DNA of 54,860 bases, counting the filler, from Bipalium vagum (taxonomy: Eukaryota), in assembly GCA_037834085.1 (NCBI GenBank). It is 3 parts of 3 records of this genome, joined end to end, with 100 filler letters (N's around TTAATTAATTAA, not from the genome) between each part and the next. Parts side by side here need not be neighbours in the genome. Positions count along the whole stretch, not along the records: positions 16,981 to 34,356 come from JBBMKC010069438.1; 2 more parts are not named here. One strand, written 5' to 3'. Below the pieces are notes generated by a model. It had not been told where the DNA came from. It worked only from the letters and a program-made list of their open reading frames with translations, and did not search any database. The position numbers were made by a program, and so were the translations under genes. Below are positions 16,881 to 34,456 of this stretch, piece after piece (positions within the stretch are counted from its first letter, which is position 1; each line of letters begins with the position of its first letter).

Positions 16881-17012
16881 NNNNNNNNNNNNNNNNNNNN
16901 NNNNNNNNNNNNNNNNNNNNNNNNTTAATTAATTAANNNNNNNNNNNNNNNNNNNNNNNNNNNNNNNNNNNNNNNNNNNNAATAATAATTACTAATTTTA
17001 TTTAATTAAAGA

Positions 17013-18147
17013 GTAGGGTTTTTGTCTTTCACAAATCCTTACATAAAAAATAAAAATTAAATTAAATTAAAAACACAAAAATAATCACAATTGTCAATAA
17101 ATAAATGTTTATTGTGGGATACTCCACACAATTACAAATACTAAAATTAGGCACTGTAAGTATAAGTATTCTTGTATAAGCATGACTAATACACCAAAGC
17201 TAAAGTGACCTCACGAACGTTTTTGAAAATCTATTCTCATAAAGGACTCTCTGTTAGCCAATGCTAAAAATGGTTTAGCAAATTTAAAGATGACAATATA
17301 AGTCGTAAAGATCTTGAAGTTGAAAACCTAAAGAAATTGATTGAAGAGAACCCAAAGCAAAAGTCTAAAGAAATGGTCACAATTTTCGATTGTCATGCGA
17401 AGACGATAAGAATTCACTTATTTGAAATGGGGAAATCATATAGAGCCGGAAGATGGGAATCGTATGATTAATTGGAATGCAAACCTCATAAGACATGATT
17501 CAGATCCATTTTAAAAAAGAATTGTGGCAACTGATAAAATGTTGGTTAAATACACTAATCCTGATTATCGCAAGCAATTTTTATCGTGAAAAAAATCCAT
17601 TTGCCCCCTCCAAACCAGGCCTATTCTCAAAAAAAGGTTCTATGGTCTTTTTGCTAGGAACTCTTGAAAATGACATATTTTTAACTTTGAACGTTACTGC
17701 GAACAATTAAACAGTATATACAGCGCTCTTCAAAATAACAAGATCCACTTTTATTATCAGAAAAGAGATTATTTTTCAGTATAGTAATGCTAGACCCTGC
17801 GTATCAAAAATGACTAACAGAAATTAATAGAAATTATGAAGTCCAGCCACATACAACAGATAACTCAGATATCGCGATTACGGATTGTCATCTGTTTCGT
17901 TCAATGTCTCACTTTCCTTAAGGAGAAAAATATGAAAACCTGTCGACATGAAAAATGACACAAATATTTTTTAATGAAAAAGGTACTGACTTTTATTCCA
18001 ATGACGATCATTTTTTGATATTACATAGATGGCAGAGAGTAGTTGACAACCATGGAGAATATTTAATCAATTAATGTTTTTATGTTGTTATACTAATAAA
18101 AATTATTTTTGTTGATTATGGCCCATAATTAAATTGGAATCCTAATA
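17013..18147 (+). mobile_element. Decayed mariner element
   Basis: Fragments KWFSKFKD…LIEENPKQ…TIRIHLFEMGK…GRWESYD (WVPHEL-like), FQYSNARPCV, DIAITDCHLFRSMSHFL, RWQRVVDNHGEYL. TIR-like end …ggaatcctaa-TA. Left boundary uncertain. Confidence 0.85.
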
Positions 18148-18750
18148 TATTTCTAATGTTTTAAATGATTACAATTTCAATAGTTTTTTATTTAAGTCAA
18201 TCAAAAATTACGAAATGCCTTTACGCAACCCAATAATTAATACTAATAATAATAATACTTCTTTTTCTTTATTACACATAGTATTATCTATCTATCTATT
18301 ATTATTATTATTTATTATTACATTTTAAGATTATGTCAACTACTTCTCAGATTAAATGTAAAGGTAATTTAACAATAATTTGCAAATATAGAAATAAATA
18401 ACAATTTTATATTAAATTAAAATTATTACGTTTTAAAATACAAAATGGTAAGCGTACATAAATTAGAAATATAAATATCATTAATACTGATTTTCCCCTA
18501 GAGTTCTTCTCATTCATGAGTAATGAGATCTAACAAGTTGATCTTGATCTGACTTCAAATAATATATTAATAATTAGGTAAGAAGGAAACCAATACTCAA
18601 TTTGTAAGATTAATAGTTCCATAACGAAAGTGCAATCTCCAACCTAAGTCATGTAATGACATCCCTTAATGCAAGACTAAATACCAATAGTGAAATTTTA
18701 ACCAGAGACTATAAGAAGACAAAAGCAATAGTAAGAAATTCTCTCCCCAC

Positions 18751-18844
18751 CTGAATTTTTTCCTTTGATAGCGCACCATGATCTTGCGAATATTTTCTTA
18801 ACGATGATAGATTATGCTCTGCAATGTTTTGACAGTAGTTTACT
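18751..18844 (-). CDS. Possible penultimate VPS16 exon
   Basis: Open frame VNYCQNIAEHNLSSLRKYSQDHGALSKEKIQ ending at 'cag|gtgggg', which joins in phase 0 to the VPS16 terminal exon. The acceptor is weak. Confidence 0.4.
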
Positions 18845-21498
18845 CTTTGACATTAAATTTTTGATTTGTTTCAGCTTTTATAAATATATAATGTAAATAG
18901 ATTATGTTCGCAACACTTGTTACTTTATTAATATTTACATTTGAAAAATTTATTTTTAGTAACATTTTCATTTTGAATTTTTAAATTAAATTTTGATTTT
19001 TTTCATTGTTTTAATTTTGGTTTTAAAAAAATTATAAAACATTTAAATTTTTTTCCCTTGCTGTTTATTTTTATATCTTTAAACGTTTAACTGAATATTT
19101 AGTATGGGGAAACCAGTTTTTGTAAACAGAACTCTAAAATACAAAATTACCTTCTATTTTCACGCTATCGTTGGGAAATTATGTATAAAATATAAAATAA
19201 CGGAGAAATTTGTTAGGAACACATTTTTATAATTCTCTTTTACTTGCATACTCTTACAAGAAATAATTATAAAAATATTTTTTTTCCTCAAACACTGATT
19301 TTCTATACTATATAAAAAAATTTGTACATGTTTTACTAGTGATTTTTCCCTTTTTTTATATATTTTATATTTGTTACATAAATTCCAAAAATTCCAAAAT
19401 GAAAAAAGTCAAATTTTCTCTTAAAAAATTGAAAATCAAACAAGAACATCAAGGCTTCGAATAAACTCAAATAATGTTACTGATGAAGAAACACTGAAAA
19501 CAACGAATAGATTTCTTCAAAACAGGAATTATGAAATATTCATAAACATCATCAACAATAACAATCAAAATGACAACCAATTAACAATTTTATTTTTTCA
19601 GAATACGTATCTTTATTCTTTAAACATCTCTTTAGTTCATTATATAAATATTGTTAAAGTTGTAACTTTGGATTTTCTATTTCTATGATATTCATTATAT
19701 TTTATTTTCTGGAATATTTCTATATTGTGTAACATTCAATTTATGACAATTTTTACTTTAATTTTTTGTGGAATAATACTCAAGTATAGGTTTTATTTGA
19801 GAATATTGTGAGCATTTTCAGAAATTACAACATACATCAATTTGATAAGTTTTGAATTTTAAATTTAACACTTTTTAAAAGAAAAAAATGAAAATTATTA
19901 TCTCATATTAAATTTAATTACTTGAAAGTAACGAGGAATTTTAATCAATAATTATTTATTATTTTAGAATGATACGAGTACTGATACTATCTTATTTATC
20001 TTTTATTATTAAATTGTTGTAAACCTGAAATATAATTATTTTGTTTTAGACTTGTACCATTTGAAAGAATGAAAGTTCTAAAAGAATATTTAGATGTATC
20101 TAGATTCGATATATTATATAAACAAAAAATCGATTAAATATCAATCTAATAATTAAATCTAATTTTATTTATATGCAACTAATTTAATATTAAATAAGTG
20201 CGATTTAGATTGTACTTGTATAATCGCCGGTTTCCTTTCTCAGCACCTAATAGAGAAGTTATTGATGTATTTCTATTTGATTAAACTATTTTATTATCAA
20301 GAAAAATCAATAAAACACCATATGGTAACATACGATGGTAATATAATATAAATGATAATCATTATTTTCTTATAAATGAATTATTCATTTAAATAAATTG
20401 TTAATTCACTTTCTTCTTTCATAGTTGTCCATGTTCAATGTTTCCTTGGTTATTTTCCTAGTTTTTTTTGACAAATTTCCCACAAAAAATATGCAGGTAA
20501 TTATGAATAATTTTGAAATTATAGGAATACCCCATTCAAAAAGCTTAACAATTTTTAATAAAACTAATTGAAACTTTCAAATGTCTTATCTTCACATTTG
20601 TTTCATTCACTTCAGAGGAAAATAAAAATTTAGATTAAATTATAATATAAATATTACTAAAGATTTTTATTTTTAGAAAATATTAAATTTAATTACTTTA
20701 TGAATTAAATTTAATTAAAATAAATTGCAGCTTAGTTCAGAAAATTCTTTATTAACAAGAATTTCAATTTATAAAAAATAGAAAATGTAAAATGAATTTT
20801 AATCATTTCAGTTCAAAATATAATTAGCCATCATTTCCTTTTAAATTTAGATTAAAAAACGTTTAATAAATTTATTAATTTATACTATAGGAAATATATT
20901 TTATTTAAATTATTTGTTTTGTTTAAAATAATTATTATGAATTAAATTCTTTTGTTTAAATTGTTCATTTTATTCAAATTATTTTAAAATTATGATTTCG
21001 CGTGATTTAAAAAGATATAAAGATTTAAAGAAAATTTAAGTTGAAATATATTTTTAATTTAATATTTTTTTTATTAAAGTGACATATGGTAATATAATTT
21101 TAGTAATTTTACAAAAGATCATTAATATTTGATTTTTTGATTTTAATGAAAAACAAAGAATTGTACTTAAACAATTTATTTCGTATTAATATTAAGAATG
21201 TAATAATAAACACCAAAATATGTAGGTGAATACCAAACATATCAAAAGTTAGGTTTGAACTTGAGAAAATAATTATATCCGTTATAAAACTGTGATATTG
21301 ATATTATTCTTATTATAACATTAATAATGATGTAATGTAAGTAATTCTTTTTCAATTTTTTGTTAGCCCCTCTGATTTTATTCTTAAATAACCAATGACT
21401 AAAGTATTTGTGATTAAAATAATTAGTTTAAACAACGGGGACTTCAACCGTTTGAGCTCAAAACTTTAGTAAAATATAGTTTTTAGTTGAAAATTAAT

Positions 21499-21571
21499 CG
21501 GAGATACTGGGATTCGAGCCCAAGGCCTTTTACATGCGCGTGAACTGTTCTGACCGCAAAGCTATATACAA
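21499..21571 (-). pseudogene. tRNA-Ala(CGC)-derived pseudogene or SINE head
   Basis: Minus strand TTGTATATAGCTTTGCGGTCAGAACAGTTCACGCGCATGTAAAAGGCCTTGGGCTCGAATCCCAGTATCTCCG. It keeps an A-box-like TAGC…GG, a CGC-AT anticodon loop, a T-arm TTGGG-CTCGAAT-CCCAG and an Ala-type 3' end ATCTCC. The acceptor and anticodon stems are mismatched. Confidence 0.7.
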
Positions 21572-22996
21572 CGACCGATTTTCAATTTATCTCACATCCC
21601 CATCCTGTAAAGCTCATACCCAGACCCGTAATCGCCCCGAGTCTCTTCTTTCCATTTCCTTTTCCTTTACTTCGCTTTTCTTTATAAATTATTTTTTAAT
21701 CACATAAATCAATATTTTTCAAAAAAGTGACTTAAATTTATTTATCGAATTACATGACATTTCTCCTCAATATCATCTGACAATATCCCAATCTGGCTTA
21801 CAATTATATCTAATATTATTATTGTTAAAAATACGATCTTGAGACTGTACCTGTCTATTCAAGATCAAGTTTCTCAGAGATCAATAATAATATTTCTCAT
21901 TCATTCAAATGTTTCGATTGCATTCATTTGGTAAAAGAATAAATTGAAACTTGTATTGAATAATCTGAAATATATTTTTATTTTTTTTCCATTATTTTTA
22001 TTTTATTATAATAAATTTTAAAAAAAAACAATATTACATGATTGAGAAATTTTTCTCATTCTTTCAATTAAGGATTAATTAAAAAGAAAAAGTGAAAATA
22101 TTTTTTTTGTTTTTCTCTATGTATTTAATATTTATATATAAATTTTTAAATATATAAAAAAATATTCTACCAAATATAATATTTTTAATTAATTATATAT
22201 AAATCAATTGAAAGACAATTTGTTATTAGAAAATTTTATTGTCTATTAACAGCCAGTCAAATTCACGCAAATTAATTGATTTTGAAAATACATAATTATA
22301 GATTTCATTTTAATAATTATTATTCTCTACGGTTGAAATAATACAATTAAAATTGTTTCTAATTAAAATCGGATCTGAAACCATCTTGACATTGGTAAAC
22401 AGATGGAACGTTATTTAGATTATTATAATATTAAGAATAAACATTTTGTTGTTAAAAACGATTCTTATTTTTTTTAATTCTTAACTGGCGGTTATCAGGA
22501 ATTTAGAAATGCCGTTTTAGAATATTGTCTATTTTGAATATTTTTGGTAGAAAGAAACCTTTAAAAGCAACGGTTTGAAATATGTATATATTGTTTAAAT
22601 TATTAAATATATTTTATATACAATCAATGAAATTATATACAGCAAACGAATATGAAACTCCAATTTCCTACATATTGTTTGAATTAGCTAATCTTAAGGA
22701 TAAATATCAGCATGGAAACCTAATTATTTTACTAATTATTTTCTAGGAAATAAATCAAATTAAACACCACCTTACATTCTTGTATGAACTTGATTAGTTG
22801 CTTCAAATCCCAAAAATGATTGAAAAAATTCAAATTGGAGAACTAAATAAAATGTTCCGTGAACAATTCTTGGAAGAAAAAACAGCATAAAAACTGAATC
22901 GTGCGTAGAATCCATCGAGATCATATTGTGTCATTCATAATATTTGAAATAGAATTTCTCATTAAATACTGTACGATTTTTGGGATAAATTTACGT

Positions 22997-23060
22997 TTAA
23001 CCCTCAGACGGCTAAAGTAAACTTACACAACAAGCTGGATAGGTACATTTGTACTTATAT
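22997..23060 (+). mobile_element. piggyBac-like terminus remnant
   Basis: TTAA followed by CCCTCAGACGGC…, a typical piggyBac 5' end. No matching partner end found nearby. Confidence 0.3.
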
Positions 23061-23342
23061 TTGTCAAACAACATATTTAAATAATTATTTAAATCAATAA
23101 TAAAATAAATTACTGTCAATAAACAGTTATTAGATTTTCGTGGAAATACATGATTTTTTCACTATATATATACATATATATCATTTAAACCAGCCAAATA
23201 TGGTATCAATATATTCAATGGTTCAATGGTTCTCCTTTACAATGTGAAATAGAATCGAATAATTCTTGGTTTGTGAAAAGATTCGCTAATTTAAGGTTTT
23301 TATTTTATTTTAAAATGAGCATTTTAATAATTTATATTCAAT

Positions 23343-24420
23343 TTGATTATGAGCTTCAGAAAACTTGGTTCATCTTCACTAGCTCAGAAAAGTCATAGAT
23401 TATCATGCGGATTTCTTCAAAAAAATTTTATCATTTTAGTAATGGTTTCAATCAAGCTTTCTAAAGGTAAAACTTATTTACCAAATTATTCAAATCGATG
23501 GCACGTGAACTGTCGAAACGGCGCTTTCGCAAATATGGTGAAATCACAGTTTGGATCGATGAATGGATTTAGTCTAAAAAAGAAAAATAGTTATTTGCTT
23601 TTGCTTTTACATAAGAGGACAGAAAGAAGAACATTAGTTGTCAGCTACGGAAATGAAGTTCCATAAAAGAAAATTCTATATCATTATTGTAAAATAAAAG
23701 GGACGAATTATCTAGAGAGTAGAGCTTTCTACTAGAGTTTATTTCAGCAAGAATACTGCGCAGAACAGGCTGGAGAAGATTAGAGTCAGAAATTATGTTT
23801 TCGATTCATCCCAGGATTTTGATAGCACATATATATGCTAGAAATTCAGATGCTAGCTTTTCAAGAAAATATGTCCCTATTCCATGCTCTTTGACTAATT
23901 TTATCGAAGAATATGCTAACCGAGGATGAAACGCGTTGAGTCTTTATGTTCCATAAAGCAAGCGTGAGTCTCCAAAATATTTTTTTCCAGAGTAAAAAAC
24001 ACAAAAATGCTTCTTTAAAAACATCTGATCGAAAATTTGTCATTCTAGTGTTATGTGGACAGAAATCGGATCTCTTAAAACAAGTTAAATATTTTTTCAA
24101 TGAAAAAGATGTATATTTTTCGAAGATTTTGTCTTCACATTGGTAAATACCTGGAAGCTGGACTTTATATAGAAAAATGGTTCTGTGTATTTATATTTTT
24201 GTATCATTCATTTTTTTAGGACTCTTCGGACTTCCTATATACAACATATACTTGATATGCATAGATTTTGGTCACCAAAATATTTAATTTTTAGAACATC
24301 TAAATACGATAGAAAAGAACTCCTCGTTTATTCTGTTATTCTTGTGTTTAAATAACTAAATAGTAAATATCAATAAAGGTCACAAAATGAAATGGACCTC
24401 TTTTCAAGAATTAACATAAG
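23343..24420 (+). pseudogene. Decayed exon-structured gene, weakly RhoGEF(DH)-like
   Basis: Broken frames with LRKVIDYHADFFKKI, YHYCKIKG, EYCAEQAG…KLCFRFIP, LILSKNMLTEDE…HKASVSLQNI in the order expected for DH helices. Many stops. Confidence 0.25.
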
Positions 24421-24643
24421 TGCAGTGAAATCATAATATAAATATCACATAATAATATTATCATATACAATAATTATAATTTTATATATTTAGACAAAAT
24501 ATAAATATAATTACACTCCTTGATCAAAATGTTAAAATAAATAAATAATTTAGTACAAAACGACAAACCTGGATTTTTCATAAAAATATTTGTTACTAAA
24601 AATATCGGTTCTATTTTTAGAATTGGTAAACCACGAAATCCAG

Positions 24644-24650
24644 TATAAAA
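24644..24650 (+). promoter_or_regulatory. TATA box of cysteine-rich peptide gene copy 1
   Basis: TATAAAA 35 nt upstream of the ATG, conserved in copy 2 (33696-33702) together with the preceding ~70 bp. Confidence 0.65.
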
Positions 24651-24678
24651 AGGAAGGCGAATTATTTTCTTTATAACT

Positions 24679-24995
24679 ATGATCGCAGCTACTTTAAAAA
24701 CATTATTTGTTTTGAGCTTTTTGTTAAGTTTACCTAAACTATTGGATGCAGGAGTGGGCGGTGTTTTGGGCTATGGAATTTGTCAGAGTGCTTGCAACGC
24801 AGGTTATGTGACTTGCTTGGCTCCCACTGGTTTCGTAGCAGGTATCAGTATATTTAAATATTCGATTTCTATTGTCCATTTTTAGGAACCTTTACCCTTG
24901 GAGCTGGAATTCCCGCGGCAGTCTTTGGTTGTTGTGCAGCCCAAGGCTTATGCATGGCAGCTTGCGCCGCATTCGCATTGAATCCAGCTACATAA
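24679..24995 (+). CDS. Secreted Gly/Ala/Cys-rich hairpin peptide, copy 1 (90 aa; exons 24679-24841 and 24886-24995)
   Basis: A 44-bp GT-AG phase-1 intron gives MIAATLKTLFVLSFLLSLPKLLDA|GVGGVLGYGICQSACNAGYVTCLAPTGFVAGTFTLGAGIPAAVFGCCAAQGLCMAACAAFALNPAT*. Signal-peptide-like N-terminus, TATA upstream, AATAAA at 25117-25122. Confidence 0.92.
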
Positions 24996-25916
24996 AATTG
25001 GATATTATCTTCATTCGTGGAAATCATTTTTGTACAGACATTTTCATTTTTTGTTCGAAGATATTTTATGTCATGTGTATAAAGGTCCTTGATAATTGTA
25101 TTTTATAAAATTTTTCAATAAAAATTTCGTTCTCAATTTTATTTATTCCTATTTTTGAAACAGGTCTATAATATAGGTCTATATCCAAAGTTTGTCATAT
25201 ACCTTACTATAAAAGGAATATGGTCTTATCGAACCTTCCGTTGAACATTAACATTGAATCGTTTTTCAGTTCACCTCCACTACCTGAATAATTCACTGAA
25301 AATAATTTATCTAAAACTAAAATTTTAAAATACCTCTTACTTATTTATAATTAATACCCTTAACCTATAACATGACTTTTATTATATATTATTACTAAAC
25401 AAATTAAAGATTAGAGAAAGAAGGCAGTAGTTTATAGTCTGCATATCCGACAACCAATTGTGTTTTTACTCTCGTTTTTTAAATCCATAATTGTCGCAAT
25501 AAAATTCTCACTCAAAAAATATTTTTGAGGAGAATAAACAAGAATATTGATTTTCTCAAAATTCACAATAAATAAAAAAACTATATTAATATAATAAAAT
25601 GGAAAAGTCAAAATAATATTAAAAACATTAAGTAACAAAAACATGTTTTTAAAAAATTTTAGGCATTTACTTCCCTAAGGTCAACAAAAAAAAAGATTAA
25701 CAGATTTAAATTATGCAGAAATTTCAAGAATAAATAACACTTCCACAAAATATTTATTTTCGAATATTNNNNNNNNNNNNNNNNNNNNNNNNNNNNNNNN
25801 NNNNNNNNNNNNNNNNNNNNNNNNNNNNNNNNNNNNNNNNNNNNNNNNNNNNNNNNNNNNNNNNNNNNNNNNNNNNNNNNNNNNNNNNNNNNNNNNNNNN
25901 NNNNNNNNNNNNNNNN

Positions 25917-26320
25917 TATTCAAATAAACATTGGGTTGAATCACTCCAACCATCAACTTCGACTGCCAAGCAAAATATTAGTTCGAAGAAGGGTTTGTTA
26001 TGTATCTTGTGAGACCAGAAATGAGTTATTAAACAATGGTGAAACGATCAACGCCAGTCGTTATACATAACAACTGATTCAAATGAACATGGCATTGAAG
26101 CAGAAACGACCAGAATAGGACAAGAGGCATAGGAAATTTATTCTATTACATGACAATGCCAAACCTCAAGTAGCAAATTCAGTCAAGGATACGTGGAAAG
26201 AACTTGGATTTGAAGTCTTATCTCATTCGTCATGTTCGTCAGACATGGCGATATCTAATTTCCATTCATTCAGATCGATGGCACATGGACTGTCAGAACG
26301 GTCCTTTGACAAATATATTT
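25917..26320 (+). mobile_element. Mariner (Mos1/mauritiana-like) transposase remnant
   Basis: WVESLQPSTSTAKQNI…ELLNNGETINASRY…LKQKRPE…FILLHDNAKPQVA…FEVLSHSSCSSDMAISNFHSFRSMAHGLSE. Confidence 0.9.
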
Positions 26321-27991
26321 GACAAAAATATATTAAACAAAATAGGCTATCATATATATGTTTTTAATTCTTAATTTCTTTGCGAACTTAATTTTAAAAC
26401 AATTAATAAATTCTCACTATTTTGTGGAGACCGAATTGATATTGTATTTTTTAACAATTAATAGATTTTTTAAATATATCAAACCCATTGGCTTTTAGGT
26501 GATTGTATGAAATGAGATCAATTAAATAAGTTCCAGGAAATATAATATTTCTTTTTTGGGACCTCAAATACTGCGCTCCAAGAATTTTTCAATTCGAAAT
26601 CAATGAAATCTTATAAAGATGACATCATGAAACTATTTTATTCCACATTGTGGACAACAATATGGCCGTTGTATTTAATTGATGAACCTGTTCTGTGTCA
26701 TTTTTTGTTGTTTAACGTTTTCTGATATAAAACGACATTACACCTGTCGACGACATAACGTTACTTTGATACGGATGAAAGTATGAAAAAATATTATAAT
26801 GATAAAAATAAAAGATAAAAATATATATCTCCTAAGATAATTTTGTCCAATAATTAAATCTGACTTCTCAACAATTTTCGCAATGAAATTCGCTGTCTAT
26901 TTTTTATGACTGTTGTAAATGTTTTTGCTTGAGTGATTTATACATCATCTAATTATTGATTTATTTTTTTGTTGATAAACATTTTTTTAAAAACCCCAAC
27001 CCTTCCCTGATTTTCTATTTCATCTATATGAAATAGATTTCCAGAATCGTTTATGGTAATTTATCCCAACCGATTATGAAACAATAATCCCCAATAGTCT
27101 CATAATAGAGATGAATGTGTAAAATTGCTTTGAAAGATTACACTTTCAATCTGGTAATGCAGCTGGTTTTTGTTTTCCCATTTTCTGAAATGAGAATTTG
27201 TCCATTGTTTTAAAATCTCTGTCAATATTTAACATGTGGCAGATATCAATTTGAGATAGTTATGGACATTTCCTGGAGGGTAGCTGATATCGTTAATGAG
27301 GAGAATGGCAGCAGTGATGATGATAGTGATGAAGGGCAATAGAATTTATCATAATTTGATCAATTATTCAGATAGGTAGAAGTTCTACTTGATGATAATA
27401 TCCGTTTTTATTTAGCAGGCCAACTGTAGATAAGGGTCAAATGCAAAAAATATCTATCTATCAAAAAATACTTGTAAATTTCACTTGTGAGCTAAACTGT
27501 CATAAATAATTATAATAATAATAATAATGTTATCATTATTAAGTTTTTGTCAGACTGCATTTCTCCAGTCTCATCATCTCTGTTGGCAGCTTAACTGTCA
27601 TTGTAAGCCAGAGAAATGATAAAAAAATCCTAAAGTTTTCCAACTCTTCGAAAACAAAATCAAAATGTGTTTTGAGAAATGATATTAATAACATGGTTTC
27701 ATTTTAGAATATAAATTAATAAAAATATTTTTTGACAATAAATGAAACATTAGGTTTTTTAAAAATGGACGTCTGTTTTTATAAATATAATTTATTTAAT
27801 GTTATTTTGAGATACATTTTTGTTGTTTTAATAAATATTATATCTTTTTAAAGTTTTAAATTTAAATTCTATTTCTGTAACCATTCCATTATTATTTATT
27901 TTAGAACAACTTTAATATGAATTTTTAATGATATTATTATTATTATAAATATTTTCATAAAAATTGTTGTTTCATTAAACCTATATTATTA

Positions 27992-28260
27992 TTAGGTCTG
28001 CAACTATGACTGTGCCCTTTTTATAGAAAATTAAAGTCTCAATAATAAAATAATGAAGAATGTTGTTTCGTCGGCATAAAATTGTCTATTTTGAAGTCTA
28101 TTAATTAATAAAACTAATCAATAAACAAATATATATCATACAGATTTTAAATCCTTAATTATTCAGCTTTCAAATGAAATATAAATCGTTTTAATCCGTT
28201 AAAAAGTGGACACTCTATTGGCTGCGGAATAAAAGAGCACATTCATAGTTGTAGACCTAA
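27992..28260. mobile_element. Mariner-type MITE, 269 bp, with ~32-bp TIRs and TA target-site duplication
   Basis: Left TTAGGTCTGCAACTATGACTGTGCCCTTTTTAT; right (reverse complement) TTAGGTCTACAACTATGAATGTGCTCTTTTAT; TA at 27990-27991 and 28261-28262. No coding capacity. Confidence 0.9.
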
Positions 28261-29084
28261 TATCTTATTATATTAAACATAAATTTGTATATAAGAACAA
28301 TATACTGATAATAATAATAATATTATTATTATTACTATTATTTATATAATTTTAAAAAATATTAATAGTTAAAAAAACAGACATAATACTGGTTTACATA
28401 AAAAAGTAATTAGTATAAATAAAAACAACTTTAAAGGTAACAGATTGTAAAAACAGTATTAAGAAGTTGTTTGGAAAAAAATTTCCAATTTTTATTTTTA
28501 TATATTATTATGATAATATTAATTTTATACTTATTATACTACACGTTATATTACTATAGTATAATAAAACCTTGAAAAAGGAAAGAGATCAATATAATAT
28601 AATGATCTAAAGAACACTTATCACTAGCAAATCATTGTTAAAGTTTTACTGTCAGCCAGGTATGTTGAATAAATTTCAAAATTCATTTATTTTATGAATA
28701 TATTTTATTTATTATTTAAAAATAAATTGTATTTATTTAAAAATAATTTCAATTTAATTATTATATAATTTTTTATAAATTATATTTTTTCAATTTATAT
28801 TTTACCATTGTTTGAAAAATCAGACCCCTCCCTTCGGAAAGCCGTCGAAAGTTGATCTGATCCATTTAAAAAATAATACCTGTAGATATTATTTTGTCAA
28901 TGAATCAAATATGAAAATCGAAAAATTTACTGAATTATATTATATATAAATATAAAAATATTATTTCGTCACTTTATCAACATTAATAATAAATATTGAA
29001 ATGAGGAGGGATGAGAGCAAAATTAATTTTTATTGAAATTAATTAAAATATAAACAAATAAATATAAATATTGTAATGGGTACA

Positions 29085-30137
29085 TCAAGATACATTTCTG
29101 GGAGAAAGATGATCGTCGGTATTAATGATTTTATACATGGTCAAATAGGCAATCAATAGTTCGATTGTTATGGCTCTGAGGACAAATTTTCCCAAATGCA
29201 AATAATTGTAGACATAACCCCTTATGGCGCTATTGTTGAACAGGTAGATGGAAAAGGATCGAGAGAACTTTTCCAAATTTCTTGTCAGATCAAAACTGAT
29301 ATTGATGACCGTGATGACCACGAAAATGACGGTAAGAAATTTGTTGATTATTCGCCTGTTGGACTCCATTCTCATCGTTCGGTTGATGTACTCAGCCGTA
29401 TTCTGGGACTTGAAAATACGTAAACCGACGCTAACTGACGGGCCGGAAAAGTTTCCAGTTTTTCTTCGATTGAAAACCAAATAAAAGAAAATGGACAACA
29501 TTAAAAATACGCTTATGATCTGAGGAAAAAGAATTTCGAAAAGGATTTCGATTTTGACAATGAGTTTATAATAGATCTCCTGATACTCCACCAATACCAG
29601 ACATGTCTTGTCTGGCATCTCCGGAGGTTTCAGCCAGCCAAACATCCACAAATAGTTGCAAAGGGCTGACAGAGACAGTATGAAAAACAATGCCGTACCA
29701 ATTTTCAGTCTGAATACTGCAAAATAACGTTTGGATTTCTCTTTGAATATAATGGTAAAGGCCCTTTCAATAGCCAAGCAAGTAACCATCCATTCGTTGA
29801 GAAGAAGTCCAGAATGGGATAGGAAATTGAACAACTTACATAAAAAGTTGGAAATCAAGTTCCATCCTTCCAGATAGTGCCATATTTCTGTAAAGTTTAA
29901 AATCCAAGTAAGAAGTCCGGAAACAAATAAATTAAATACATCGATAAAAGAGATACATCTTATGAGATAAATACCACCGATTTTTCGATTTATTAACATT
30001 AATTGTCGTAATTGAACGATAATGATTACATTTATGATACAACCAAGAACAAAAAATGACAATATAAAATAATAACCAAAGATATATAATAGGTTTTCTA
30101 TATCATTGTTAGTTTTATTTTGGAAGCTGACATTCAT
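29085..30137 (-). CDS. Intronless rhodopsin-class (class A) GPCR, peptide-receptor-like orphan
   Basis: 350-aa ORF with seven hydrophobic segments and N-terminal N-glycosylation sequons. TM1 GxxxN (GCIIN), TM2 ISFID, TM3 CK…LAIERA (E/DRY-like), ECL2 Cys, TM5 Pro. Confidence 0.9.
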   Translation of the reverse strand: MNVSFQNKTNNDIENLLYIFGYYFILSFFVLGCIINVIIIVQLRQLMLINRKIGGIYLIRCISFIDVFNLFVSGLLTWILNFTEIWHYLEGWNLISNFLCKLFNFLSHSGLLLNEWMVTCLAIERAFTIIFKEKSKRYFAVFRLKIGTALFFILSLSALCNYLWMFGWLKPPEMPDKTCLVLVEYQEIYYKLIVKIEILFEILFPQIISVFLMLSIFFYLVFNRRKTGNFSGPSVSVGLRIFKSQNTAEYINRTMRMESNRRIINKFLTVIFVVITVINISFDLTRNLEKFSRSFSIYLFNNSAIRGYVYNYLHLGKFVLRAITIELLIAYLTMYKIINTDDHLSPRNVS

Positions 30138-30548
30138 TGTGATAAAAATAAGGAGAAAAATTATTACTTGAAATTATTCGTTTATTGAGCCAATAAAAAA
30201 TCAGTTTTTATTTTTCATTTTGTCAAATATGATTGGTCAAAAAAATTTCATTCAAAATTATATTCTGTTAGAAAAAGCTTACTAATTGTTTGTGTTACCG
30301 TAGAAAGTGAAAAACAACAGAGAAAAGAAAAAAGGTATAACAATACATTACTAGAATAAATTTATATACAAAATTTGAAACAGTGGATCAGGTTGAGCAG
30401 GTTTTACGTGAATTTTTTACCTTCAAAAACAAAGAAGGATATTTTCATAAAATTCGACAATTTAGTAGAGATTTGGTATGAGGTCGTTTAAAACAAAGAC
30501 GTATATTTAGAAGATAATCACCTTTTGCTCTCCTTTTATGTACATGTA

Positions 30549-31510
30549 CAGTCCTCGTAAAAAGTCTGTTCATCCCTATAAGAAATGTAACTTTTAATGG
30601 AAATGAATAAGTTCAAACTTGAAATTTATTAAATAAGTAAGTACTTAATAGTTTTAATATTTAGTAGGATATCCTTCAGATGTTTTGACCAATTCCAATA
30701 TTTTTGGCATGGAGGACACAGTCTTCTTGCATAGATCTGGATTAATTTTGTACCATTCATCTTGAACTGTCTTCCATAATTCTTCAGCAGAGTTGTGTAG
30801 CACTTTTGAAACTTTTCTTTTCAGGATACCACCGATATTTTCGATGGGATTCGTGTCAGGAGAATTACCTGGCTAGGATAAGACATCAATATTTTTATTT
30901 TTTTAAGAAAGACTGGGTTTTTTGACTCTTTGTGATGGAACCAAATCATGTAGAAAGACAAACACGGTTTTTGAGAATTCTAAGCATTTTCCAATCATAT
31001 TTATGTCCTGAAGAATCTCTTTTTGATATTTCTCGGTATTCATATTACCATTGTATCTTTAAAAGTTCAACTCCAGTACTGTTGAAGCAGCCTCAGACAT
31101 ATATATGTGTGCCATGTTTTAAAACTGGTTGCACAGTCATCTTTAATGTTAGATTCATCTAATCAATAATTTACTTGAGGACGAATATGATTGAAATATG
31201 TACTCGTCCCTAAATATAACAGCTCTCCATTTGATATAAGCCTTGGTCCAGGTAACTCTTTTCATACGTTGATTTAATTTTATAAATGGCTTCTGAGTTG
31301 CTGAATATCTTCTCAAATCGTAATTTTTGAGGCTTTTTTGAACAGTATTGGTAGAAACACGTTGGCCAGCATTAGTGTTGTACGTACAAGTTAATCTATA
31401 TCCACAAATAATAAGCGATTGCTTTAGTAAATGTGTGTTATAGCCCGTGGATCTATGGTTATACAATTGGTAATTAAGTAACAAAAGTTCATTTGTATCC
31501 AAAAACACAT
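30549..31510 (-). mobile_element. Decayed Tc1 (DD34E) element
   Basis: TA-CAGT terminus at 30547-30552. Minus-strand fragments KPFIKLNQRMKRVTWTK…WRAVIFRDE, KHGTHIYV*GCF, PGNSPDTNPIEN, EWYKINPDLCKKTVSSMP…GYPTKY*. Confidence 0.88.
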
Positions 31511-31559
31511 ATATCATAACTTTTCATACTGATGAAACCATCTTGATCTTTTTTGTTAC

Positions 31560-32050
31560 GTTTTAACAAGCTTCTATCCACTTCTTAGATTATACTTATG
31601 TGCAGTGGAGGATCCATATTTCATCCATAATAACTAAAAGGAGAATAAAATATGATTTATTATCATTAAATTGATCCAGACATGATTGAGAAACATTGCA
31701 TGCAATTTCATCGACTGTTAGAAGATATGCACCCATCTTTTAAAAATTATTTTCATCTTTAAATCTTCATGCAAAATATACCAAACTCGGTCAACTGAAA
31801 TGCCTGTGGCAGAATCTTTTTCACTCAATTTTATCCAATGATCATCTATAACCATACCATAAATAATTTTTTGTGTTGAGACATTTTTTAGGCATAGGGG
31901 ATCTTCAATCATTGTATGACCATTTACATATTACAATTCATCTTTTTTATTGAAAAAGAAGGAGCATCACTTTGCGTGGATATCTGTTGCGGATAATTCT
32001 TCCAAGTGAAAGAATTTTATTAATTTAATATATGATAGAACAGATATTCC
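31560..32050 (-). mobile_element. Mariner transposase remnant
   Basis: GISVDRVWYILHEDLKMKIIFKRWVHIF (HTH plus WVPH-like) followed by LVIMDEIWI. Confidence 0.75.
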
Positions 32051-33416
32051 AATTGGTCTAATATGTTAATATTTCAAAATTTTTGAATCTAAGCATGTTA
32101 ACATTTATTATTTATTATTTTATATAGAACAAGTGCTGCAGAAGACTACCAGATGCTTTGTGAGGTTTTAGAAAAACATGGTACATGTGAGCATTAGTTT
32201 AAGCGCTTCAGGAATAACGATTTCATTGTTCAGGCTGTCGTTAAGAATAAATGTATAACATAACAGAATATTATAATAAAATAATTAAATTAAAATCAAT
32301 AATACCAAAGTAATTATTTTTATTGGTGATCGATTTCTAATGTGATTACCATTCATTATTGATGGACATTCACAAATGAATTCGATATTTCAACGTATAC
32401 TTTTCTTTCATTAGACTTTGATCTGGAAAAATAAGCATTAGATGAAAATAGCGTAAAAATGGTTTCTCCAGAAGGTATATATATATACCATTTAAAAGGA
32501 ATTCCATTAATAACAGTAACAGTTTGACAGGCAAAAATTCATTAACCTTTGAACTGCTACCTAATTCTTGCCGGTATACACAAAATGTAAACACAGAAAG
32601 AGACCAAGAGCACATTTTAACACGAATTAAATTATAATGAAATTCTTAATGAAATCACATATAGCTTCAATCACCCTGACCATTTTCCCTTTCTCCTTAA
32701 ATCAGCCTTTTATTTTATGAAACTATGAAGTTTATTCTAAATCTTCCTCGTTATATTCAACAGGATAAATTCCTTTACTTTGGAAAAGTCCATGGAGGAT
32801 TGGTATAGTTTTTCTTTAGCATTTCAAATTGAAAAGTATTTTTCTTCTTTGATCAATTTGGAAACACATTATTTAATCAATCAAGCATAAAAAATCCCAA
32901 TTCCAATTCATAGTTGAACACTGTCAAATTTTATTGGTGCAAATTTACATTTTGTGAATATTTCCAATTTTCATTTGCCTCTGACAATGAGCAAAAAGGT
33001 TCTGGCAACTTTATAAGAAGCACTCCCAATTTCCCAATCTTCCCAGAATGTAAGATCACCAATCTATAATTAATAGATAAAAATAACATATGTGGACTAC
33101 ATAATTGTAAAGTTTAATTAGATTTTTGGTAAAATTCTTTTTAAAAATTAAATAAAATGAAGAAATATTCCAGAAAGAATTTTCATTATCATCATAATTG
33201 ACAGGTATTGGTTTTAATTACCAAATTTTGTTAATTTTAGAACTTTAGAAAACCAAAGAATATTGTTGAATACGAAGGTCAAGTTTATTACCCTTCTGGT
33301 TAAATAATTGAATATTGAATATCATTTCAGATCACTTAATATAATGGAACCCTTCTCAAGAGGTAAGATAAATAAAGGGATTTAGGTATAAAAATATTTT
33401 AACCTTTTTAAAAAAT

Positions 33417-33654
33417 TTTTTAGTAACAAATATTTTAATGAAAGCGCGGTTCTCAATTTAGACACTCAATTGTTATTTTTTTAACATCTTGATCAAAAAG
33501 TCTATTTAGATTACTATTATTATTATTTTATATATTTAGACAAAATATAAATATAATTAGACTTTTTATTTAGGCTTTCAAAATATTGAACAATGTTACT
33601 TGTGTTACAAAACATCAAATCAGGATTTTCCATAAAAATATTTGTTACTAAAAA
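33417..33654. repeat. Inverted repeat (foldback/MITE-like) upstream of peptide gene copy 2
   Basis: TTTTTAGTAACAAATATTTTAATGAAA (33417-33443) is the near-perfect reverse complement of TTTCCATAAAAATATTTGTTACTAAAAA (33627-33654). Weaker pairing continues inward. Confidence 0.7.
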
Positions 33655-33729
33655 TATCTGTTCTATTTTTAGAATTGGTAAACCACGAAATTCAGTATAA
33701 AAGGGAGGCGAATTATTTTCTTTATAACT

Positions 33730-34046
33730 ATGATCGCAGCTACTTTGAAAATATTATTTGTTTTGAGCTTTCTGTTAAGTTTACCTAAACTATTGGATGC
33801 AGGAGTGGGCGGTGTTTTGGGCTATGGAGTTTGTCAGAGTGCTTGCAACGCAGGTTATGTGGCTTGTTTGGCTCCCACTGGTTTCGTAGCAGGTATCAGT
33901 ATATCTAAAAATAAGATTTCTATTGTCCATTCGTAGGAACGTTTACCCTTGGAGCTGGAATTCCCGCGGCAGTATTTGGTTGTTGTGCAGCACAAGGATT
34001 ATGCATGGCAGCTTGCGCTGCATTGGCATTAAATCCAGCTACATAA
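33730..34046 (+). CDS. Secreted Gly/Ala/Cys-rich hairpin peptide, copy 2 (90 aa; exons 33730-33892 and 33937-34046)
   Basis: Same 44-bp intron. MIAATLKILFVLSFLLSLPKLLDA|GVGGVLGYGVCQSACNAGYVACLAPTGFVAGTFTLGAGIPAAVFGCCAAQGLCMAACAALALNPAT*. Four amino-acid differences from copy 1. TATA at 33696, AATAAA at 34168-34173. Confidence 0.92.
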
Positions 34047-34456
34047 AATTGGATATTATCTTCATTCGTGGAAATTATTTTTGTACAAACATTTTCATTT
34101 TTTGTACGAAACTATTTTATGTCATGTGTATAAAGGTCCTTGATAATTGTATTTTATAAAAATTCTCAATAAAAAATTTCACTTTAAATTTTTTTGTAAT
34201 TTTAAAACAGATATCAATTGATGGGTATTGCCCACTTGCCTTGAACAGATTAATTATTCTGGATGCTGAACTTTTCGCCATCTTCAGCTTCTTACTAATA
34301 GCACTTAATGAATTACCTTCTTTGTGTAATAATAAAATATTAGATCGTGTAATTGGNNNNNNNNNNNNNNNNNNNNNNNNNNNNNNNNNNNNNNNNNNNN
34401 TTAATTAATTAANNNNNNNNNNNNNNNNNNNNNNNNNNNNNNNNNNNNNNNNNNNN

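Follow-up and report, generated by a model that had tools for sequence, protein, structure and literature searches.

Two pairs of short open reading frames (ORFs) recur in one AT-rich piece of the Bipalium vagum genome, and the question they raise is what they encode and what the product might do. The window is the whole 54,860-nucleotide stretch of DNA that was analysed; all positions follow its numbering, and the piece examined spans 16981-34356 (record JBBMKC010069438.1), with a GC content per kilobase of 0.18-0.35. Near-identical ORFs of 68 amino acids appear in the ORF list at 24679 and 33730, each followed by a 78-amino-acid ORF in another frame. Read directly from the DNA and recomputed, both loci consist of a 163-nucleotide exon, a 44-nucleotide GT..AG intron in phase 1 and a 110-nucleotide exon ending in TAA, which together encode 90 amino acids. 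In both copies the intron splits the codon of Gly55 after its first base. The four listed fragments are two intact two-exon genes, and the annotation is corrected to that effect. The best overall explanation, which we hold to be probable, is that they are a paralogue pair of a widespread protein family and specify a secreted, charge-free hairpin stapled by disulfide bonds.

The elements of the two copies, in order along the window, are as follows.

24466-25130 (ends approximate), plus strand: duplicated unit, copy 1, from repeat families and pairwise alignment; similarity starts at about 24466 and fades just past AATAAA
24644-24649, plus strand: TATAAA box of copy 1, 35 nucleotides 5′ of the ATG, a putative promoter element kept in both copies
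24679-24841, plus strand: exon 1 of copy 1, covering the predicted signal peptide (residues 1-24), predicted helix 1 with C35, C39 and C46, and the first base of Gly55; family matches at E 1e-8 to 1e-3, profile score 34.9 bits
24842-24885, plus strand: intron of copy 1, 44 nucleotides, GT..AG, phase 1, at a site common to homologues of five named taxa
24886-24995, plus strand: exon 2 of copy 1, covering the loop TFTLGAGIP, predicted helix 2 with C70, C71, C77 and C81, and the stop codon TAA at 24993-24995; profile score 34.0 bits
25117-25122, plus strand: putative AATAAA poly(A) signal of copy 1, 122 nucleotides 3′ of the stop, kept in both copies
33512-34181 (ends approximate), plus strand: duplicated unit, copy 2, from repeat search and pairwise alignment
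33696-33701, plus strand: putative TATAAA box of copy 2
33730-33892, plus strand: exon 1 of copy 2; family profile score 33.6 bits
33893-33936, plus strand: intron of copy 2, 44 nucleotides, GT..AG, phase 1
33937-34046, plus strand: exon 2 of copy 2, including the TAA stop; family profile score 34.4 bits
34168-34173, plus strand: putative AATAAA poly(A) signal of copy 2

Position 24679 is the first possible start of copy 1, because an in-frame TAA lies 33 nucleotides 5′ of its ATG, at 24646-24648; copy 2 has an in-frame stop at the same distance. At about 670 bp, the duplicated unit is small and extends from 5′ of the TATAAA box to just 3′ of AATAAA; its core is 92-94% identical between copies, which are offset by 9,046-9,052 bp. 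The nominal inter-copy distance of 9,051 bp is an estimate, since it spans an assembly gap of estimated length. This gap (25769-25916) begins 773 bp 3′ of the stop codon of copy 1 and about 640 bp past the end of the duplicated unit, and no exon, intron or conserved flank of either copy reaches it. A six-frame motif search revealed no further copies in the 17-kb piece. A scan for bacterial promoters and terminators is meaningless in an AT-rich eukaryote and was set aside.

Are these working genes? The two exons were joined only for substitution counts, composition and tree placement; database searches used them separately. The copies differ at 13 coding sites, nine synonymous and four replacement, with a replacement divergence (dN) of 0.020, a synonymous divergence (dS) of 0.147 and a dN/dS of 0.136. 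Both paralogues are selectively maintained, under purifying selection. Seven nucleotide differences in exon 2 produce a single amino-acid change in the spliced frame, against seven in the frame that was open in the ORF list, and the intron has diverged more (6 of 44 positions) than the exons (13 of 270). Scored against a family profile built without either copy, exon 1 reaches 33.6-34.9 bits and exon 2 34.0-34.4 bits, whereas all other frames of the 17-kb piece stay at or below 5 bits. Further, homologues run ...AG-TFTLG... uninterrupted over the proposed splice junction.

An alternative is that both loci are unexpressed, being either dead copies or a chance pattern. The position of the TATA box, which implies a very short 5′ untranslated region, fits such a view. 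However, both copies are intact through 90 codons, dN/dS is 0.14 with constraint in the spliced frame only, the splice sites, TATA box and poly(A) signal are all kept between copies, and both exons score high against the family profile. We find this alternative barely credible. The gene model and the family membership, with splicing inferred from sequence, appear almost certain. The initial annotation had proposed that a 44-bp intron turns four fragments into two intact 90-amino-acid genes, and the exon and intron reading, the frame-specific constraint and the profile scores all bear this out.

What kind of protein do the genes encode? Its only charged residues are K7, K20 and D23, all of them N-terminal to the predicted cleavage site between A24 and G25. 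The predicted signal peptide (residues 1-24) contains K7, an 11-residue hydrophobic stretch and a terminal ...LDA before the G at the cut, which aligns with ...VQA before GP in the family; the Leu at position -3 is unusual. In neither copy does the 66-residue mature part (residues 25-90) include D, E, K, R or H. This part comprises 15 Ala, 12 Gly, 7 Cys, 5 Val, 5 Leu and 5 Thr, with others fewer, and its grand average of hydropathy (GRAVY) is 1.15. Both copies carry the mirrored pattern C35-x3-C39-x6-C46 ... C70-x6-C77-x3-C81. A seventh cysteine, C71, adjoins C70 and makes the count in the mature part odd. A signal peptide of about 24 residues and a charge-free mature part of 66 had been claimed at the outset; charges are indeed confined to residues 1-24, and the predicted cleavage site fits this division. 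The palindromic cysteine spacing described there is likewise present in both copies, but the count was wrong, as C71 had been overlooked.

Do such proteins occur elsewhere? A Pfam search with each exon of both copies and with 13 family members gave no family match at E up to 1. An exhaustive search of 1.84 billion representatives with exon 1 alone returned nine matches (E 1.3e-8 to 9.5e-4). These include proteins of 87-95 amino acids from the beetle Callosobruchus and the centipede Strigamia, as well as ORFs on contigs that cover exon 1 only or read through the intron. The beetle protein (P0006) in turn retrieved 15 relatives, and a 13-sequence profile at least 270, so that the homology search envisaged in the initial annotation, run with the exons separately, widened from nine to 15 to at least 270 relatives.

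The relatives span fungi, Amoebozoa, Heterolobosea, diatoms, chlorarachniophytes, arthropods, a nematode and B. vagum. Dozens of fungal members, many of 86 amino acids, come from Rhizoctonia and Ceratobasidium, where they are labelled variously 'Zygote-specific protein', 'Cysteine-rich protein', 'Hydrophobin' or 'transmembrane protein'. Others belong to the Glomeromycota (Rhizophagus, Gigaspora, Racocetra, Scutellospora and Cetraspora) and to the chytrids (Phlyctochytrium, Quaeritorhiza and Geranomyces). Protist members are found in the amoebozoan Planoprotostelium, in Acrasis, Skeletonema and Amorphochlora, and among MMETSP transcripts. Animal members are those of four bruchine beetles, the mite Medioppia, the centipede Strigamia and the nematode Plectus. 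Named examples are Callosobruchus chinensis CAH7728321.1, Strigamia maritima T1J1C0 and Planoprotostelium PROFUN_12403.

Judged by these similarities, the B. vagum pair belongs to what appears to be an old, eukaryote-wide and uncharacterised 'zygote-specific' or 'cysteine-rich' family. The initial annotation had pointed to a cysteine-rich family of fungi, algae and invertebrates, and the searches recover just such a family in fungi, protists and scattered invertebrates. What is new is the B. vagum member; the family was already known by database name, though uncharacterised. It has neither a Pfam model nor a solved structure, none of the relatives carries a Pfam domain, and the family profile matched nothing among PDB sequences (E of at least 5). 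The label 'zygote-specific' goes back to the class V zygote protein of Chlamydomonas, to which database names suggest a link; no Chlamydomonas sequence occurs among the 120 matches listed. A lead towards ZYS1 was dropped, since the names ZYS1A and ZYS1B denote another protein, which is a putative transcription factor (PMC4889651).

Tandem arrangement is frequent in the family. A pair in Rhizoctonia solani (L006:2001-2317 and 3462-3775) lies 1.46 kb apart. A Strigamia 'protein' of 291 amino acids (P0001) is a mis-model that reads through three adjacent copies. Tandem arrays are thus known as the B. vagum pair, the Rhizoctonia pair and three Strigamia copies in a row.

How strongly is the family constrained, and how typical are the B. 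vagum copies? Conservation was measured over 115 intact family cores. The pattern C-x3-C-x6-C ... C-x6-C-x3-C is present in every one of them, and D, E, K, R and H are all absent from 113. Conservation is 100% at ten positions, namely the six Cys, N40, G51, Q74 and M78, and both B. vagum copies have them all; the loop AGTFTLGxGxP is nearly as conserved. Exactly six Cys occur in 75 cores, and a seventh Cys adjoins the third in 38 (33%). A seventh Cys adjoining the fourth is confined, among the 115, to the two B. vagum copies, and the site of C71 is Ser in 89% of the family. Core identity of the B. vagum protein is 67% to the beetle, 56-59% to fungal and 58% to amoebozoan members. Its closest relatives lie on two AT-rich metagenome contigs, L005 (69%) and L003 (64%). 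At the C-terminus B. vagum has NPAT where the family usually has APTP; the Pro, which is 98% conserved, is kept, and the last two residues differ. L003 and L005 also end in NP.., and this ending appears to be a sub-clade trait, compatible by sequence with family membership.

What fold might the mature part adopt? AlphaFold2 was run with family alignments on two homologues rather than on the B. vagum protein itself. P0006, the beetle protein with the 67% identical core, gave a mean predicted local distance difference test score (pLDDT) of 83.5 and a predicted template-modelling score (pTM) of 0.64, with helices at 2-26 and 40-63. P0057, from the chytrid that is the nearest named relative in a quick tree, gave a pLDDT of 86.0 and a pTM of 0.69, with helices at 2-25 and 36-62. 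Both models place a two-stranded mini-turn between the helices. The helical hairpin suggested in the initial annotation is therefore borne out by the models of two homologues, and the mature product is very likely to be a helix-turn-helix hairpin, as predicted from them. Foldseek found nothing significant in the PDB (E 6-9). A wide VIA-align search yielded 987 chains at Z of at least 5, the best at 7.8; all are generic helical hairpins, and the search was uninformative.

The spacing of the cysteines points to how such a hairpin might be locked. Offsets of 0, 4 and 11 in the first helix and of 0, 7 and 11 in the second bring all Cys of either helix onto a single face, to within about 40 degrees; the remaining residues on that face are Gly and Ala. 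A nested ladder in an antiparallel hairpin requires a constant position sum, and 35+81, 39+77 and 46+70 each equal 116. In one homologue of 103 amino acids (P0022, from a Logan contig), the first and last Cys have each moved four residues outward, giving C-x7-C ... C-x7-C with the mirror kept. This covariation supports pairing of the outermost Cys, so far as sequence can indicate it. The same homologue carries a long C-terminal extension rich in Gly, Ala and Leu. A triple nested disulfide ladder (35-81, 39-77 and 46-70) seems to us the probable arrangement. The initial annotation had proposed these nested disulfides. Their geometry on one face, the sum of 116 and the shift in P0022 stand on its side, as indirect backing.

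The same cysteines could instead serve as thiolate ligands. Paired hairpins would then form a four-helix bundle in which the six Cys and M78 bind Cu(I) or another soft metal; bacterial copper storage proteins are the model for a Cys-lined four-helix bundle that binds Cu(I). Consistent with this, the six Cys lie on the inner helix face, with the invariant Met and Gln at the same level, and an odd number of Cys would pose no problem. Yet the predicted signal peptide implies a secretory route, where thiols are oxidised, and intramolecular pairs explain the mirrored spacing more simply. There is also no His, Asp or Glu, and neither copper storage proteins nor metallothioneins came up in sequence searches or, with significance, in fold searches. 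We judge metal binding to be very improbable.

How might a disulfide-locked hairpin act? Following cleavage between A24 and G25, the 66-amino-acid product would fold as an antiparallel two-helix hairpin with a helix-helix interface of Gly, Ala and Cys, and the AGTFTLGxGxP tip would form a short beta-turn. Three nested disulfides (35-81, 39-77 and 46-70) would lock it, leaving C71, at its B. vagum-specific site, unpaired and either free or available for an intermolecular covalent bond. Such a stapled hairpin could hardly persist as a lone soluble monomer, because it is uncharged and has a GRAVY of 1.15. It might act by self-association or by partitioning into an extracellular hydrophobic phase such as a wall, an egg or cocoon matrix, mucus or a membrane surface. 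A strictly charge-free secreted protein must use an unusual physical principle, be it assembly, an interface or a membrane. An extracellular self-assembling or interface role, by analogy with hydrophobins and not by relationship to them, can be put forward tentatively.

Hydropathy raises another possibility, that of a small integral membrane 'proteolipid': once the signal peptide is cleaved off, both helices would sit in a membrane as a tight hairpin zippered by Gly, Ala and Cys, with its Cys reduced or, in the case of C71, acylated. Its invariant Asn, Gln and Met would then drive oligomerisation or partner binding within the bilayer. The mean Kyte-Doolittle values over 19 residues are 1.35-1.78 in helix 2 and 0.6-0.9 in helix 1. 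The values for helix 2, the GRAVY of 1.15, helices of about 25 residues and a core free of charge in 113 of 115 members would all suit a bilayer. A 'Glycine zipper 2TM' cluster and the transmembrane hairpin of MscS are among the shape matches, and some Ceratobasidium members bear the NCBI label 'transmembrane protein'. Moreover, the invariant Asn faces outward on an apolar helix, and Asn in an apolar helix drives helix association in membranes. Set against this, helix 1 is below the transmembrane level, flanking Lys or Arg to set the topology are missing, and no match to the Pfam glycine-zipper model (PF05433) or to other membrane models was obtained. The 'transmembrane' database names are automatic. 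The mirrored Cys spacing and the concerted shift in P0022 are predicted by disulfides but not by lipid-facing thiols. A membrane-embedded proteolipid is in our view unlikely.

The initial annotation had put forward a membrane-active, antimicrobial or surface-coating effector, and its leading idea can be read as a secreted defence peptide or toxin whose stapled hydrophobic hairpin would insert into target membranes and permeabilise them. Cross-braced helical hairpins of this kind are known from plant alpha-hairpinins, sactibiotics and nemertean B-neurotoxins. With its predicted signal peptide, its small size, its several Cys, its tandem duplication and its hydrophobic surface, the protein looks as such a peptide would, and insignificant PDB fold matches include 1vib (template-modelling (TM) score 0.50-0.60) and 6h2f, a component of an alpha-pore-forming toxin. 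These fold matches, however, have E values of 6-9. Ten residues of the core are invariant, and the core is 56-67% identical across animals, fungi and an amoebozoan, whereas defence peptides and toxins usually diverge fast, and the two copies are under purifying rather than diversifying selection (dN/dS 0.14). There is no cationic or amphipathic charge pattern, unlike in most antimicrobial peptides and in the basic neurotoxin B-IV. A toxin or defence role is decidedly unlikely. A structural or interface role is preferred over it because of the extreme conservation, the purifying selection between copies and the tandem arrays, which suggest dosage.

Several observations weigh against the secreted, stapled hairpin as a whole. 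A word-index search with exon 1 in a collection of 5.8 billion proteins gave no candidate, the spliced product being absent there, and no paper that characterises the family turned up in the library searched. Apart from the Atlas clusters of the family itself, fold searches brought up generic helical hairpins only, and they are silent on function. Seven Cys, an odd number, misfit a purely intramolecular disulfide scheme. Finally, helix 2 is borderline transmembrane (1.35-1.78), and some records name relatives 'transmembrane protein', which leaves some room for a membrane-embedded state with reduced Cys.

How did B. vagum come by these genes? The initial annotation had suggested that they were acquired horizontally and now carry a host-style intron. 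However, the phase-1 intron that splits the Gly codon ahead of TFTLG sits at the identical site in all of the following homologues.

Planoprotostelium: intron of 46 nucleotides
Quaeritorhiza: intron of 119 nucleotides
Rhizophagus: intron of 76 nucleotides
Callosobruchus maculatus (L009:3001-14612): intron of 11,345 nucleotides
Medioppia: intron of 72 nucleotides
Contig L001: intron of 60 nucleotides
Contig L002: same intron site
Contigs L003 and L004: intron of 202 nucleotides
Contig L005: intron of 42 nucleotides

In Rhizoctonia and Phlyctochytrium a phase-1 intron lies 13 codons upstream instead, the Gly site being the commoner of the two. The family member on GC-rich contig L002 (L002:388-700, P0009) has TGA at the codon of the fifth Cys and may be a pseudogene or a sequencing error; its intron site is as in B. 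vagum.

Because the same site is used in an amoebozoan, a chytrid, a glomeromycete, a beetle and a mite, the B. vagum intron was inherited with the gene, and only its size and base composition are host-like. The C. maculatus homologue is a resident beetle gene and not fungal contamination, since it has an intron of 11,345 nucleotides at this site. Third-position GC (GC3) in the B. vagum genes is 0.29-0.34, like that of the genome; the overall GC of the gene, 0.47, is due to Ala and Gly codons.

Trees say less. The phylogeny suggested in the initial annotation was run by maximum likelihood, and with 63 columns it is largely unresolved. B. vagum groups with L005 and L003 (support 100/95). The animals are not recovered as a single clade. 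In the quick tree this B. vagum/L005/L003 clade adjoins Quaeritorhiza, with a support of 82 in the Shimodaira-Hasegawa-like approximate likelihood-ratio test (SH-aLRT). A constraint of animal monophyly, applied to the named animals, B. vagum and L003/L005 (the animal origin of the latter being assumed), was not rejected (log-likelihood (lnL) difference 46; approximately unbiased (AU) test, p-AU 0.105).

Recent horizontal transfer is unsupported, given the inherited intron site, the host-like GC3 and the result of the AU test, and the suggestion of an acquired gene with a host-style intron does not stand. Transfer in general is neither shown nor excluded, and an ancient transfer remains compatible with the data. 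Vertical descent followed by many losses accounts no less well for an intron site that animals, fungi and Amoebozoa have in common. The family is too short for robust trees, and its conserved intron offers a simple marker with which to separate vertical descent from transfer.

We speculate, as a rather unlikely but larger picture, that the family comprises ancient, eukaryote-wide, charge-free alpha-hairpins with three disulfides, which self-assemble as hydrophobic extracellular layers on resistant or exposed stages, and which have been inherited vertically and lost many times. Were this true, the layers would lie on zygospore and spore walls, egg shells, cocoons and cuticle, and in function they would be the helical equivalent of what hydrophobins form. 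The origin of the family would then lie in an ancestor of animals, fungi and amoebae, in line with the shared intron, and B. vagum would have retained two working copies. The B. vagum locus itself is ordinary; it is the family that deserves attention, given its wide spread and its want of a Pfam model, a structure and a literature.

The surroundings of the two copies contain the following features.

29085-30137, minus strand: intact, intronless rhodopsin-type receptor gene of 350 amino acids (Pfam 7tm_1, E 1.6e-9), with Atlas matches to invertebrate chemoreceptor-like clusters
30654-31043, minus strand: short ORFs beside the transposase remnant, with no Pfam match
31155-31517, minus strand: Tc1/mariner-type transposase remnant (HTH_Tnp_Tc3_2, E 8e-9), between the receptor gene and copy 2

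The receptor gene sits between the copies, marks the contig as animal and is joined to copy 2 without any N. Being physically linked to this animal-type gene, the copies are not contamination. Short ORFs on the plus strand at 23343-23666 and 26204-26374 share, by eye, '..RWH..C.NG..' and may be repeat remnants flanking copy 1; neither reaches the threshold for a Pfam match, and both went undetected in the DNA repeat search.

How, finally, does the B. vagum family compare with known systems? The sole small disulfide-rich protein among the Foldseek matches is neurotoxin B-IV of Cerebratulus lacteus (1vib, 55 residues), with TM scores of 0.50 (query) and 0.60 (target), an insignificant E of 8.7 and a probability of 0.16. 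The likeness is that of a worm-secreted helical hairpin braced by disulfides, with no sequence relation; neurotoxin B-IV, a strongly basic protein, carries four disulfides that are arranged differently. The glycine zipper 2TM model (PF05433) was considered and rejected, there being no Pfam match and only a generic shape match, with the hydropathy of helix 1 below transmembrane level.

With the twin-Cx3C and twin-Cx9C (CHCH) proteins the family shares mirrored Cys motifs and would share a helix-loop-helix with nested disulfides. CHCH proteins reside in the mitochondrial intermembrane space after import by Mia40, have no signal peptide, and are charged, soluble and two-runged. No similarity to them was detected by Pfam or by the PDB profile search. 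Plant alpha-hairpinins are helix-loop-helix peptides of the form CxxxC ... CxxxC, with two nested disulfides, excised from seed-storage precursors. The B. vagum family would share with them the helical hairpin and the mirrored outer C-x3-C ... C-x3-C pairs, for which nested pairing is expected. It differs in its putative third rung, its charge-free composition, its much longer predicted helices of about 25 residues, its own putative signal peptide and its own gene, and its occurrence beyond plants. No homology to alpha-hairpinins was found, the family profile matching nothing in the PDB.

Fungal hydrophobins are likewise small, secreted, Cys-rich, hydrophobic and multi-copy in fungi, and it is from these features that we infer the analogy of a surface coat. 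They have eight Cys (C..CC..C..C..CC..C) and a beta-barrel, whereas the B. vagum family has six or seven Cys and is predicted to be all-helical. The 'Hydrophobin' label that UniRef gives to some Rhizoctonia members is a mis-annotation: their Cys pattern is another one, and there is no match to PF01185 or PF06766, including for P0018. Set beside the zygote-specific/cysteine-rich family itself, the mature part of the B. vagum protein differs in opening with GVGG where the family has GP. In its length of about 85-90 amino acids, its putative signal peptide, its mirror of six Cys, its charge-free core, its loop, its phase-1 intron and its tandem copies, it is like the rest of the family.

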